DNA of 56,298 nt, counting the filler, from Platydemus manokwari (taxonomy: Eukaryota): NCBI GenBank assembly GCA_037951405.1. It is 5 parts of 5 records of this genome, joined end to end, with 100 filler letters (N's around TTAATTAATTAA, not from the genome) between each part and the next. Parts side by side here need not be neighbours in the genome. Positions count along the whole stretch, not along the records: positions 33,339 to 43,582 come from JBBMOY011139772.1; 4 more parts are not named here. One strand, given 5' to 3'. A program made the position numbers and the translations under genes. Of this stretch, positions 100-42,142 are shown piece after piece (the stretch's first letter is position 1; every line of letters starts with the position of its first letter). The notes under the pieces are model-generated. The model saw nothing but the letters and a program-made list of their open reading frames with translations. It did not search any database and had not been told where the DNA came from.

Positions 100-1010
100 T
101 TTTTGTTTGAGAAAGGATTGTTAAATTCCGAAATTTATATTTCAGTTCAGTACTCTCAATTGTCGGGATGTAATTATTATCTTATTTGGTTGTATACTCA
201 ACTGATTGTTTGTCTATTAATTGAGTCACAGTTTGTACAATTTGTTCCCTTCAATATAGCATTTTTGATTGTTTCATGGAATAATTCCATTTTCAAAGTT
301 CATAACTATTCATCTGTCGACACTGCCTCACTGTGTTTAGTTTCACTTTGCTTAATTTCACTTTCATTTTTTCCAGACTTAGTTTTTATACCATTTAGAT
401 TATGTCACCTGTATTCACTCTAGCAATAACATTGGGCATGCCCATCGAGATTTGTTCTATTCCTCGTGAATTCCGCACTATTTACTCTATATCCTTTATT
501 ATATCGTTAAACTCCTCCTAATGAAGCTTTGTTTCTTCAATTCAGCCCATTACATTTAAATTCATCATTGTTTCAATTATTTCTATTATTGTTACATCAT
601 TTCAGTCTGTTTTGATATATTAGATCATTTTCATTACGATCCCAGTACTTCTCTCCTTTTTTCGAGAATTACCTCTTCTACTCCACTAGTAATTGTGTCT
701 CGATGTCTAGTTACCATTATTATTCCGATTAGGATTGTACCCAACCCTATTATTATTTCCTCTTTTAGCTTCCGATTTCGATTATTATTATTTCTTCCAT
801 ATTCATATCATTACGAGTTTTTTTATGTCTTGTTCCTTCTGGAATCGTTCTAACAAATTTTTAAAATCTTGCCATTTCACGTTGTCCTCAGGTTTCTTCT
901 GATCTTTCTCTAATATATCTGTTGTATTTTTTCAAAATAGGTTTAATTTTTTCAACGAATTTCACTTCATTAATTTTGTATTCATTATGTCCATAAAGCC
1001 TTGACTTATT
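100..1010 (-). mobile_element. Possible highly decayed LTR-retrotransposon gag-like relic
   Basis: The minus strand gives broken K/E-rich coding-like stretches (KPEDNVKWQDFKNLLERFQKEQ; KLKEEIIIGL) and a possible eroded zinc knuckle near 400-435 (QCYC*SEYR*H). There are many stops and frameshifts. Confidence 0.25.
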
Positions 1011-1788
1011 TAAACTATTGTATTAGATTCATTTTGATTTGCAATATATTTTATTTTGTCTTATTTTACTGCTGTTTATTGAATTTTACTTTATTATCAT
1101 TTATATTTTAAATAATATTTTTATTATAATCACCCGAGTGTCTAGCAACAACAACATCTTATCTGTTTGGAGTCCAGATAAGTTGGAGATTTAGGGTAAC
1201 CATATTCTGGAAAATTAATAGCGTTAAAAAAATCCTTCTGACACTACGACATTAATCAAAATCTTTTTGCAAATACTGCATTTGTAATTTGAATTTAGTA
1301 CTAGTATATAAATACACATCAATCTTTAGCAGCTGTGGTATTTGCTGCCACCATCTTGAAGAACTGATTCACTTTTCGGGGACTATCGGCTTGAGTTCGA
1401 TTTTTTCGCTTCAGTCGGTCATTTCAAGCTTGGTCCCTTGGTATGTAATATTGTTCATACTGCTCTCTTCGTCCAGTTCTATCCGTTTTGTTTTGTCTTG
1501 GGTGACCGCCAATTTTTTTTAATGCAAATAATTTTAATGTTTTTAATGCTCCACTGATTTATTCTGTCCTTGAAATTAATTTCGGAATGCTTTAATAAGC
1601 ATGAGTTGTAGATTTTCTTCCATAATAATTTCACGTCTCATACACTATTTTACTCCATCGTATGTCAATGGTTTTCATGGTTTCCTCATATTAGACTTTA
1701 TATACTTCAAATGCAAATCCTCTTAGATGAAATGGTTTTCTAGCAAGTATTTGGCGCTTTCTTCTATCTGTTGGAGTTCTTAATTTCT

Positions 1789-36484: not shown

Positions 36485-36553
36485 TTTATTTTATGGGTCC
36501 ATATATTTTTCAGTATTTATTATACTGAAAAATATATGGACCCATAAAATAAA
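36485..36553. repeat. Perfect 32-bp inverted repeat with 5-nt spacer
   Basis: tttattttatgggtccatatatttttcagtat - ttatt - atactgaaaaatatatggacccataaaataaa. Confidence 0.95.
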
Positions 36554-38154: not shown

Positions 38155-38981
38155 GTGTATATGATTTCCTCTTTTTTTAAACCAATCGAATTATGTTCCA
38201 GGAATTTTATGGGCAAAGCTTCATCAATCTTGTGAGAATATCAAATTGAATTCAATTTGACTTAGTATAGAATTTAATTTATATTGAATTTGATTTTAAA
38301 TTGAATTTAATTAGAATGGAATGTCGAGTCTTTTCAGTTCGTTTTCGATTCGGGTTACAAATCTCATGGGTAAGACAAGTATGATTGTCTTGTTCAGTGA
38401 TGGATAATTGAAAACTGATGACAATTTAGAAATTTTTGATTGGCTATTTGTTTGGGTATAGATGAAATATTTGTGTGAGTGTTCCATCTTAAAGGATTTC
38501 TTTGTAGTTTTTAATCTTGCTTGATTTCCGGTCGTTTTTGATGTTCTCGATAATACATTACGAGTAACAAACAATCTAAATTATTACTGGAATCATCAAA
38601 TTAAAGGATGCAAGAACTCATACATTTTCAAAACAGGAAAATATGATGTACAATAATTATTTAATCAATATTCGGGTTGAATAACTTTTAACTGTATCAA
38701 ATATTTTGTGTTCAGGATTTACCAATATTGTCGTTAATATCAACTTACCATGTTTATCATTTTTTTAAATGAATTGTCTTTCTTTAGGCATTCCCTCTGT
38801 ACAGACAATTTACCATTGATTTTAAAATGGTTTAAATTTACAACTCTCAGTTCATTCAGTATTTTCACAAATACGTGAAAATTTAAAAACTTAAAGATTA
38901 ACAGGTACAATAAATTCGATGGCACATAGAACAACATAGATACAATAAATAAAAAAATAAACCACCTTTGGTTGAAAAATG

Positions 38982-39040
38982 GGCCCTATTTCGGCCCTCC
39001 ATAGGCCTCATCAGTATCCCGGTTCAGAGATAAATAGTAC
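38982..39040 (-). ncRNA. Type III hammerhead ribozyme, apparently intact
   Basis: Minus strand: CUAU-U | UAUCUC-UGAACC-GGGAUA | CUGAUGA | GGCC-UAUGGAG-GGCC | GAA-AUAG. It has the complete core, a 6-bp stem I, a 4-5-bp stem II, a 4-bp stem III (CUAU/AUAG) and NUH = AUU. Confidence 0.88.
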
Positions 39041-39107
39041 GATCTCTCGGATCCTTCAATAACGATGGGTGCAATGATGATTATAGTGGTTTTGTGATTG
39101 GAATAGT

Positions 39108-39198
39108 GTTATATTTCGGCCTTCCATGGGCCTCATCCAGGTTTTATTGCCAATACAAGTTTCAAAGTTCATTTTCATTTTGATAAAATCCTATATAT
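39108..39198 (-). ncRNA. Second, degenerate hammerhead ribozyme (type III-like topology)
   Basis: Minus strand: UAUAU-A | GGAUUUUAU...(about 35 nt)...AUAAAACC | UGGAUGA | GGCC-CAUGGAA-GGCC | GAA-AUAUA. Stem II is nearly identical to the first copy, but the CUGAUGA box is altered. Confidence 0.6.
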
Positions 39199-39211
39199 AT
39201 ATATATATATA
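39192..39211. repeat. (TA)10 microsatellite
   Basis: Directly visible; abuts the second hammerhead. Confidence 0.95.
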
Positions 39212-40626
39212 AACTCTAAGGAAAAAGAGGAAAATGACTACAAAAAAGTATAAGCGAATTCTAAACACAAGCCGAATTAAACCACATCAGCTTTCATAAA
39301 ATCAATTCTCCTCTCACCTCCTTTTCATCCAGTGGCATTAGTTCCCAACACTGGTTGTTCTAATTCTCCTGAGCATTGCAGCTTCAAAACATGACTTAAT
39401 TGCAGTAGCATATTTGTTATTTTCGTTTATAATTGTACAGATAATAAATACTATTTGATTATAATTGCATTTTTTATCACAACACTATCTTAAAAATGTA
39501 ACCTACACTTTATGTAGTGCTAAGGGTCAGATATTGGTGGAATTACTTAATGAAATTTTTTATTTAAATTTATTTCAAAAAATAACGAACTTTTATTATT
39601 TTTTTAACGTGACGCCTAAAATCTAATCTTAAAGATAGTCATTAAAAATTAATATTTTTGAAATGATTTTGTTTTAATAAGTAATAATTAGAATTTATAA
39701 ACCATTAATTATTTGTATATATTTAATAAATAACTAATTAATTTTTTCTATTTAAAATATCCTAAATTTTCAGAAATCTATTTTTAGTATTTATAATATT
39801 ATAAAAATATTCAAATATTTAATAAACAATTTAAATGAATTAAAAAAATTATAATTAAATTTTATTAAATTATACTTTGAAACAAATATTTAATTAAAAT
39901 TAAAAAATCAATTTTAAAATCGTATAATATTTATTTATTTTTTAAAAAATATTTTAAAATGCATTAAAAATTTTTATTGCTTGAATCCATATTTTTACAT
40001 GTTTTTATTGATTTTTATTGGTTTTTTTGTAAATATCTCTATTTTCTTGGTTTCATTGTGACATTCATCGAGCTCGACTTTAATTGAAAGCACCATGTGG
40101 GATTTTGGGATTTTGACTTTTTAATCCTTGTAAATTTATGATATCGATTTATTATTAATTTTCTCGTAATTAAATACAGGCTCACTGTATGAAAATAGAA
40201 TTTCGATTTGTTACAGTAATAAATATAATATCCTAAATTAAAAGGAAATAAGTAAAAATTTCTAATAATTCTTTACAGTTGAATGAAAATGAGGAATGAA
40301 ATTTTAAAATTTTTCTGAAAATGGATAAAAGGCTGTAGTGTTTTATCATATGCCTAATATCATTTCTAGAACTTTAAAAATACCTATTTTTTCTTAATTT
40401 TAGTTTTTTATATAGATTTTCAATGTTTTTTATCAGTTTTAATGAGTCATCATTTTTATGAATATATAATTTATAAATTACGGAATTTCTGGTTATTTCA
40501 AGATATTGCTAATTTGAAATTTAATTAAAATTTTCCAAATAATAATAATATTTTGTTTAAATAATTAGATTATTTTAATTAAATAATTTCTCTGGATTTT
40601 AATTTTTTCAAATAAATAAATAAATA

Positions 40627-42142
40627 ATGAAAAATTCTACCACTAATGAAAATGTAAAAGAAGGCGCTATATTTACTGATATTAAATCCAACCATTGGGT
40701 AGTGGGTCAATTACTTGGGCAAGGGGGTTTTGGATCCATTTATACAGCTCGAGATGTGTTATCCGATGAATTTAAATTTGTTATCAAAATTGTAAGTCAA
40801 CTTTACTATCGCTTTATGAATTAATTATGAATTAATTAATTTTTAAGGAACCAAAATCAAATGGAACTATTCGTGTTGAGACTGATTTTTACATGCGTTT
40901 TTGTGAAGAGAAAATGAGTTCGTTTAATTAAAATACTAGATTTTTTGTTATTGATTTATATCAGTTACTAGTTGGATTAATGAAAATAAATTAAAATCCC
41001 TTGGAATCTCACGGTATATTAGCCATGGCATAGAAGAAATAGGTGATTATAGATTTCTCATAATGGAGAGATATGGCGATGATTTACACAGAATTTTAAT
41101 GAAAAATAATTTGAGTCAGAAGTGTCTGTTTCAGATAGCTATTAATATTGTAATATTCTTTGGACAAACATTTTAGTTTTAATATTTTTTTAGCTCGATA
41201 TATTGGAATATTTTCATAGCAAAGGATATTCTCATAGGGACATAAAGGCAATGAATATATTGCAAGGATACCAATCAACTCAAGTAACTTAATTATATAA
41301 TTAGATTTCAATTTATTCATGTTTAGATTTATTTAGTCGATTTCGGATTGACTCATAAATTCAATTTGGACGGGAAACACAAGCCCGAAGTAATTGATTC
41401 AAAGATTAAGCATAGCGGTACATTAGAATTTTGTTCAAGAGATTCACATAGGGGTTTGTTGAATTAATAATTATCTATTATTATCTATTATTATTATTAT
41501 TTTTTCCAGGATTATATTCCAGTCGTCGAAGTGATATCGAAAGCCTTATGATTAACCTAATATTTTGGCTCACTTGGGATAAAAAGAATGACTTTTCTGA
41601 ACGAGTTGGATACGGAAAACTGCCATGGTTGAGTTACATCAAAGGTTTGTCAATGGTCTGAATATGCAACGTATAAATTTATGGTTCTAGATAAGGGAAA
41701 TCAACGACGTAGTCCGAAAGTTTTGAAACAAGTTTCGAAATCCAAAGAGAAGTACATTGGTGAACCGAATTTATTAATTGAAAGTGTTGGACTAAACAAT
41801 CATTCGTGGACTAATGGTAAGTTTATTCATGATCGTATTTTTTAATTCCGTGATTTTAACCGGAAAAATCAAATTGAATTTTATTAACAGAATATTAAAT
41901 AATCTATATTTATCATGATATATTAATTAGATTTCGTGAATCTTGTCACCTATGTTTCCAAATTGAAATATTCTGAACGACCGGATTATGATGATATTCG
42001 TCAACAATTTGCCAAGATAATTTGTTTAACTAATAATCAATTGAATAAATCGTCAATCGATTTCAATGATTTCCGAAATATAGATTGGAACGATTCTACT
42101 TTGTCATCAACCCTCTCAAATGAAACAGTATCTCATTTGTAA
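40627..42142 (+). CDS. VRK1: Vaccinia-related kinase (VRK family, CK1 group), 8 exons
   Basis: Exons 40627-40791, 40848-40917, 40965-41149, 41194-41283, 41327-41453, 41510-41644, 41691-41817 and 41931-42142 splice in frame. Motifs: LGQGGFGSIY, VIKIEPKSNG, YRFLIMERYGDDL, HRDIKAMNIL, YLVDFGL, HSGTLEFCSRDSHRG, SRRSDIE, KLPW, LKYSERPDY. The symbol is family-level. Confidence 0.9.

Follow-up and report, generated by a model that had tools for sequence, protein, structure and literature searches.

The window, by which we mean the whole 56,298-nt stretch of DNA that was analysed, carries on its minus strand, at positions 38983–39040, a motif that could be confirmed as a genuine type III hammerhead ribozyme motif and is filed as such. 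It quite probably represents one copy of a short, non-coding, multi-copy repeat family of a metazoan genome, a family in which the units are predicted to be self-cleaving and of which the copy in the window has decayed. The window locus itself is a 5′-truncated fragment of ~1.6 units located in unique intergenic DNA, and the element is a variant of the retrozyme and satellite-hammerhead kind that falls outside both described retrozyme families. The features of the locus are listed in Table 1.

Table 1. Features at and near the hammerhead repeat; positions count along the whole window
Feature	Position	Strand	Basis
Repeat fragment, 3′ part, U-rich on the ribozyme strand	38938–38982	−	Contig depth 164–1283
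Complete type III hammerhead (downstream copy)	38983–39040	−	Direct reading, RF00008, R1, descriptor scan
Stem II GGCC/GGCC plus U39003–G38997, loop 2 AUGGA	38993–39007	−	Reading; fifth pair covaries
Stem I UAUCUC/GGGAUA, 6 bp, loop 1 UGAACC	39015–39032	−	Direct reading, 15 metagenomic hammerheads
Spacer between hammerhead copies, part of the repeat unit	39041–39111	−	Contig depth 430–1084
Upstream 5′-truncated hammerhead, core GAUGA through stem II to GAAAUA	39112–39137	−	Direct repeat, R1
VRK1-like protein kinase gene, introns ~30–50 nt	40627–42139	+	Homology; context only

Read on the minus strand, the two strands of stem I lie at 39032–39027 and 39020–39015, with one G–U among the six base pairs, and enclose loop 1 at 39026–39021. 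The catalytic core consists of CUGAUGA (39014–39008) and GAA (38992–38990), between which the stem II strands (39007–39004 and 38996–38993), lengthened by one extra pair, enclose loop 2 at 39002–38998. In stem III, CUAU (39037–39034) pairs with AUAG (38989–38986) over 4 bp, and the outer part of the stem continues with a mismatch of A39038 with G38985, followed by the pairs U39039–G38984 and G39040–C38983. A test of the core position by position found C3, U4, G5, A6, N7, G8, A9, G12, A13, A14 and an H17 other than G each to be present; the A15.1–U16.1 pair corresponds to A38989–U39034, and since H17 is U39033 the cut is predicted between 39033 and 39032. With loops closing stems I and II and stem III left open, the motif is type III. 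The initial annotation had put forward the same core nucleotides, three stems and type III topology, on which the minus-strand reading and the full-length alignment to RF00008 now agree, and it had placed the cleavage at the position where H17 indeed falls. Its further proposal that a U–G pair closes loop 2, leaving AUGGA, is upheld by the metagenomic relatives of the motif, in which this position is paired in 15 of 15 hammerheads and covaries.

These relatives were obtained by scanning for an exact pattern derived from the window, covering the core, stem II and loop 2 and leaving three positions free. The pattern matched 20 metagenome contigs (L001–L020), with no match in IMG/VR and none in 185,579 prokaryote species genomes (GTDB). 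Type III hammerheads make up most of the 20 loci, stem I being ~6 bp and loop 1 5–8 nt long; three matches are without a perfectly paired stem I, one of them showing no recognisable stem I at all. Loop 1 reads UG..CC in most of the loci, and in L015 it is identical to the UGAACC of the window. When 15 distinct metagenomic sequences were aligned, stems I and III were found to covary, with 98.7% of cells paired, double changes at 9 pairs and observed values that none of 500 shuffles reached. The fifth pair of stem II is GC in seven of these hammerheads, CG in five and UG in three, and because the position of U39003–G38997 is always paired and covarying in the relatives, loop 2 of the window motif is to be read as AUGGA. 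Both the UG..CC loop 1 and the AUGGA loop 2 are common to the 15 hammerheads with covarying stems, the loop–loop contact itself being without covariation, and to judge from the sequences this conservation implies that the two loops are likely under constraint.

A covariance model built from the 15 metagenomic type III hammerheads, with the window left out (model R1), scored the window motif at 62.4 bits (E ~7e-19), a score in which the share of core, stem II and loop 2 is circular because the pattern used to fetch the relatives was derived from the window. The features that were not forced in this way, namely a 6-bp stem I, a UG..CC loop, U16.1, H17 and a 4-bp stem III, coincide at one of 20,348 positions of the 10.2-kb piece that holds the locus, and that position is the real site. 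The upstream partial copy of the hammerhead received 34.2 bits from the same model. In Rfam, the family RF00008 (Hammerhead_3, clan CL00010) aligned end to end, with model positions 1–54 at 38983–39040, at 24.2 bits, which is below the gathering score of 48.5 and about half of it; of the comparison with Rfam that had been proposed in the initial annotation, the full-length alignment to Hammerhead_3 was thus obtained, but not a score at the gathering level. In Rfam searches at gathering and with E up to 10, only Hammerhead_3 matched, and the opposite strand was without a ribozyme. The low score is a property of the RF00008 model and not of the motif, because well-paired hammerheads of this loop subclass at seven metagenomic loci, perfectly paired in six cases, likewise went unmatched by RF00008 at gathering.

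Could AT-rich DNA nevertheless have produced this likeness to the hammerhead consensus by chance? Taken alone, CUGAUGA-N8-30-GAAA has an expectation of 0.3 occurrences per window and is not significant, the Rfam score lies below threshold, and the z-score of the minimum free energy (MFE) of the isolated copy, −0.38, is unremarkable. However, a descriptor for the complete type III motif, requiring all three stems, U16.1 and an H17 other than G, found a single site in the 10.2-kb piece of the window that harbours the locus, namely this motif, and none in 3000 dinucleotide-preserving shuffles. Together with the R1 score, the presence of a second copy and the existence of a multi-copy family with a better-paired majority form, the shuffles rule out a chance match, to which we attach practically no probability.

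The family became apparent from a search of public sequencing runs, in which a single run (X1) contained the locus, with 0.94 of the sampled words; the run is stored as contigs and is not RNA. Since depth in the flanks of the repeat is even, at ~9.8 over unique AT-rich sequence, X1 appears to be genomic DNA, probably from the source sample. When the X1 contigs were aligned to 38500–39700 at 80% likeness, 269 contig pieces could be placed, nearly all of them on 38938–39137 and most of them 80–95% alike. Summed depth rises from the level of the flanks to 430–579 over the spacer and the upstream copy and 1084–1283 beside the ribozyme core, with a peak of 3462 over the core itself; these values, like those given below for individual sites, are summed contig depths and per-site variants of one run, not copy numbers or full copies. 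They indicate that the family numbers roughly a hundred copies or more. Many of the contigs run into different flanks, 164 of the 269 pieces lying only partly on the repeat. The repeated element family that had been supposed at the outset is accordingly substantiated by the 269 related contig pieces as well as by the second copy 125 nt upstream in the window.

The majority form of the family differs from the window copy at several informative sites. C replaces A at 39038 in 87% of the depth and A replaces G at 38984 in 90%, so that stem III of the majority reads GUCCUAU/AUAGGAC with seven perfect pairs, and at H17 (39033) A replaces U in 89% of the depth, which makes the cleavage site AUA as against AUU in the window. 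Positions 38981 and 38982 also differ in most copies, and the sequence GGCCC, which pairs with the 3′ strand of stem II, is consequently absent there. G-to-A changes account for ~11% of the depth at each of G12, 10.2 and 11.4, and with such changes in core and stems many copies must be dead, a sign that the family is old and decaying.

Folding predictions place the window copy among the decayed members. For the 58-nt motif, the hammerhead fold has a free energy of −10.4 kcal/mol against an MFE of −14.3 kcal/mol, and all three stems are present in ~4% of the predicted ensemble. With flanks added, a GGGCC/GGCCC hairpin dominates the predicted folds of the window copy, the window-specific GGCCC at 38985–38981 forming a hairpin that competes with stem II. 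Once the three majority letters are put in, the hammerhead fold (with the extra U–G pair) becomes the MFE structure, at −19.1 kcal/mol. That the MFE structure of the isolated copy is not a hammerhead thus reflects decay of the window copy and is not evidence against the family. The earlier description of the ribozyme as apparently intact holds for the core, which is complete, but not for the remainder: relative to the family majority one stem III pair is lost and another weakened, AUU has taken the place of AUA, the GGGCC/GGCCC hairpin has been gained, and the active fold is confined to a small part of the ensemble. On the strength of these predicted structures, the window copy is probably a relic that would have little if any activity in vivo, and functional importance would be unlikely. 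As a separate observation, a sigma-70/terminator scan read 38981–38997 (minus strand), a GGGCC-N7-GGCCC hairpin followed by a U run, as terminator-like; this reading is irrelevant for a eukaryote and was discarded, the scan having flagged only the competing hairpin.

The second copy in the window forms with the first a 26-nt direct repeat, 92% identical, at a spacing of 125 nt, and the unit so defined has a GC content of 42% in an AT-rich genome of 27% GC. Because homology to the family ends at 39137, the upstream copy is without stem I and cleavage site, and no unit-length RNA would be releasable from the window locus. Other members continue further. At least 20 contigs extend past 39137, and there the 5′ half of a hammerhead is present in full; its stem III strand is GUCCUAU, the site AUC, stem I UGUCUC/GAGGCA and the loop UGGUCC; in comparison with stem I of the window there is one compensatory change from A–U to G–C, and there are two one-sided G–U/A–U changes. 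In one contig, 38983 is joined back to 39081 via 23 letters resembling the start of the spacer, which gives a head-to-tail period of ~122, and 19 contigs run past the ribozyme into sequence resembling the 3′ tail of the window's repeat.

From these features, intact members of the family are predicted to carry hammerheads ~122–125 nt apart on one strand, with AUA or AUC as the site, stems I, II and III of 6, 5 and 7 bp, UG..CC as loop 1 and AUGGA as loop 2. With hammerheads recurring on the same strand at this interval, a transcript through two or more units would cut itself to unit length. Read-through transcripts would be cut after H17 to give ~125-nt RNAs with 5′-OH and 2′,3′-cyclic phosphate ends, the unit RNAs could be closed to circles by a host RNA ligase or by the ribozyme itself, and a retroelement enzyme might copy them back into DNA, thereby spreading the repeat. 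We infer each of these steps, from cleavage and the release of monomers to circle formation and the way in which the repeat spreads, by analogy with hammerhead chemistry, with satellite hammerheads and with retrozymes (PMC7229834, PMC4918200). Dispersal by insertion would fit both the truncated 5′ end of the window copy and the variety of flanks.

It could also be that the repeat is an ordinary satellite or tandem repeat in which the hammerhead does no more than trim the transcripts, newt satellite 2 and the cave-cricket repeat pDo500 being examples, in which case there would be no circular or retrotransposition cycle and the repeat would have spread by unequal crossing-over and segmental duplication. 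The head-to-tail joint and the two copies 125 nt apart are in keeping with this, and so is the lack of hallmarks of a retroelement: ARAGORN found no tRNA-like gene in the piece, a tRNA-Met primer-binding-site pattern had no match near the element, and reading of the sequence revealed no poly(A) tail at the window element and no clear target-site duplication around it. The DNA around the repeat showed no long ORF or reverse transcriptase. Folded as a circle, the 125-nt unit of the window, which is a decayed copy, is 46% paired with a z-score of +0.47, so that a viroid-like rod was rejected for this copy; the value is to be set against >70% for retrozymes, and this want of compactness keeps a plain transcribed satellite live. 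On the other hand, the window copy stands isolated as 1.6 units in unique intergenic DNA with its 5′ end inside a hammerhead, for which insertion is the better fit, and many contigs leave the repeat into different flanks. We consider a plain satellite unlikely, and prefer a dispersed family of short, non-coding repeats with units that would cleave themselves.

The family resembles the retrozymes of Acropora, Mytilus and axolotl, Schistosoma Sm-alpha, newt satellite 2 and cave-cricket pDo500, all of them short, low-GC, non-coding repeats. Like metazoan non-LTR retrozymes and satellite hammerheads it would be both tandem and dispersed, with the hammerhead on one strand in each unit and unit-length products expected; a tandem arrangement is suggested by the two window copies, one of them truncated, by the 20 complete upstream hammerheads and by the one head-to-tail joint. 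Repeat-borne hammerheads of animals, known from non-LTR retrozymes, satellites and Penelope-like elements, are of type I, in units of 150–450 bp, and the monomer RNAs of metazoan non-LTR retrozymes are >70% paired and their hammerheads often have a weak stem III (PMC7229834, PMC4918200). The present family departs from these retrozymes in being type III, in the 7-bp stem III of its majority, in its unit of ~122–125 nt and in the low pairing of the window unit, itself a decayed copy. It likewise differs from the Sm-alpha SINE, in which a tRNA-derived part is combined with a type I hammerhead, in having no tRNA part and in the type III topology.

The literature assigns type III hammerheads to phages, viroid-like RNAs and the LTR retrozymes of plants. 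This agrees with what the initial annotation had stated, that genomic hammerheads of animals are mostly type I and that type III is a plant and viroid-like form, and adds phages to it. Plant LTR retrozymes have ~350-bp LTRs, ribozymes 600–1000 nt apart and a GC content >55%, and feature primer-binding-site and polypurine-tract (PPT) motifs, 4-bp target duplications and a loop 2 that is usually 4 nt long (PMC4918200). The family described here shares with them the type III topology, a 6-bp helix I, a 6-nt loop 1 and a short helix II, as well as the principle that two ribozymes in direct orientation delimit the excised RNA. The spacing of 125 nt, the GC content of 42%, the lack of a match to a primer-binding site and of a clear target duplication, and the 5-nt loop 2 set it apart.

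Type III hammerheads that have been reported from animal genomes are isolated, atypical forms with long helices, from termites, dipterans, Drosophila pseudoobscura and HDV-like agents (PMC7936874); type III elements of insects that are unpublished are referred to in one review. In the atypical forms helix I is long and contains an internal loop, helix II has 6 bp, and there are an additional hairpin and a GCCR/YGGC pseudoknot (PMC7936874). A Watson–Crick contact between loops 1 and 2 may be common to them and to the present motif, in which it would join the invariant letters CC and GG; unlike them, however, the motif has helices of canonical size and is highly repeated. In the literature, as far as our incomplete coverage of it extends, we found no account of an animal repeat family with a canonical type III hammerhead.

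The hammerhead itself resembles the type III hammerheads of phage and viroid-like contigs from metagenomes, which have in common with it the 6-bp stem I, the UG..CC loop, the GGCC strands with their covarying additional pair and the AUGGA loop. The loci L001–L020 differ in being single motifs on GC-richer contigs, many of them before a ribosome-binding site, and their stems I and III and flanks are unrelated to those of the window. Among these loci, L004 lies on the contig of a phage, in which genes for a primase and a terminase large subunit were recognised. At L004:9942–9996 (plus strand), and in most of the 20 GC-rich loci, the hammerhead lies directly before a ribosome-binding site and an ATG, a location ahead of phage genes that suggests possible processing of the mRNA at that point. 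Two other contigs, each of ~1.75 kb, carry a type III hammerhead of this loop subclass and a Hairpin-meta1 ribozyme on opposite strands, in L003 at 1096–1162 (plus) and 1339–1394 (minus) and in L005 at 176–243 (plus) and 335–392 (minus); the layout suggests that these may be viroid-like circular RNAs.

One might presume from this that the family goes back to the hammerhead of a phage or viroid-like RNA, gained by horizontal transfer and subsequently amplified in the animal genome, a proposal about the origin alone that can stand beside the main explanation. The stretch of core, stem II and loop 2 occurs exactly in 20 metagenome contigs, the UG..CC loop 1 is shared independently of it, and among the contigs are the phage with its terminase and primase and the two with a Hairpin-meta1 on the other strand. 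However, the likeness is limited to ~30 constrained nucleotides and might reflect convergence or common ancestry, no relationship is apparent in the flanks or in stems I and III, and IMG/VR and the 185,579 prokaryote genomes gave no matches. Such an origin appears improbable to us, and the account of a decayed copy from a metazoan repeat family does not depend on it.

Somewhat more room, though still tentatively, may be given to the broader proposal that this is the first animal repeat family built on a canonical type III hammerhead, retrozyme-like, giving rise to ~125-nt unit RNAs or circles, with a ribozyme module that, to judge from the loop architecture it has in common with phage and viroid-like RNA hammerheads, may have been acquired horizontally or be an ancient shared form. 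If this were true, circles of ~125 nt would be smaller than any hammerhead circle described. A canonical type III motif in a hundred or more animal copies at a spacing of ~125 nt blurs the divide between type I and type III. The family may serve as a test case for whether the retrozyme life cycle of self-cleavage, ligation to circles and reverse transcription depends on the topology of the ribozyme and the size of the unit, and for whether the hammerheads of animals and those of viroid-like elements and phages have a common ancestry. Should the host be a parasitic flatworm, an abundant species-specific repeat would in addition be of practical use as a target for diagnosis.

The VRK1-like gene with its tiny introns that lies near the repeat identifies the host as a metazoan; its matches neither bear out nor contradict the flatworm supposed in the initial annotation. 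The best database match of kinase exon 3 is 62% identical, and named relatives are from arthropods and a fish, at 40–48%; the kin of the best-matching protein (P0001) belong to arthropods, cnidarians and vertebrates, at 33–46%, and an exact-protein look-up with the ORF of the kinase exon returned no identical entry. The repeat is situated in intergenic DNA at 1.6 kb from the start of the kinase gene and on the opposite strand. This intergenic position could be taken to mean that the hammerhead has been domesticated as a regulatory ribozyme in single copy and acts upstream of the VRK1-like gene in the processing of a host transcript. Yet the motif is one of many copies, it has decayed beyond the family majority, and no conserved gene was found nearby on the ribozyme strand, so that domestication strikes us as very improbable in comparison with a dispersed repeat.

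Some further sequence features were noted around the locus. Just upstream of the repeat on the ribozyme strand lie a (TA)10 microsatellite at 39192–39211 and a stretch of 300 nt (39639–39938) with a GC content of 8.7%. At 36488–36550 there is a perfect AT-rich inverted repeat of ~63 nt, with arms of ~29 nt and a loop of ~5 nt, which matches several miRNA-precursor models on both strands at 30–38 bits, against gathering scores of 76–90, and which could represent a gene for a hairpin RNA or else a small palindromic element.
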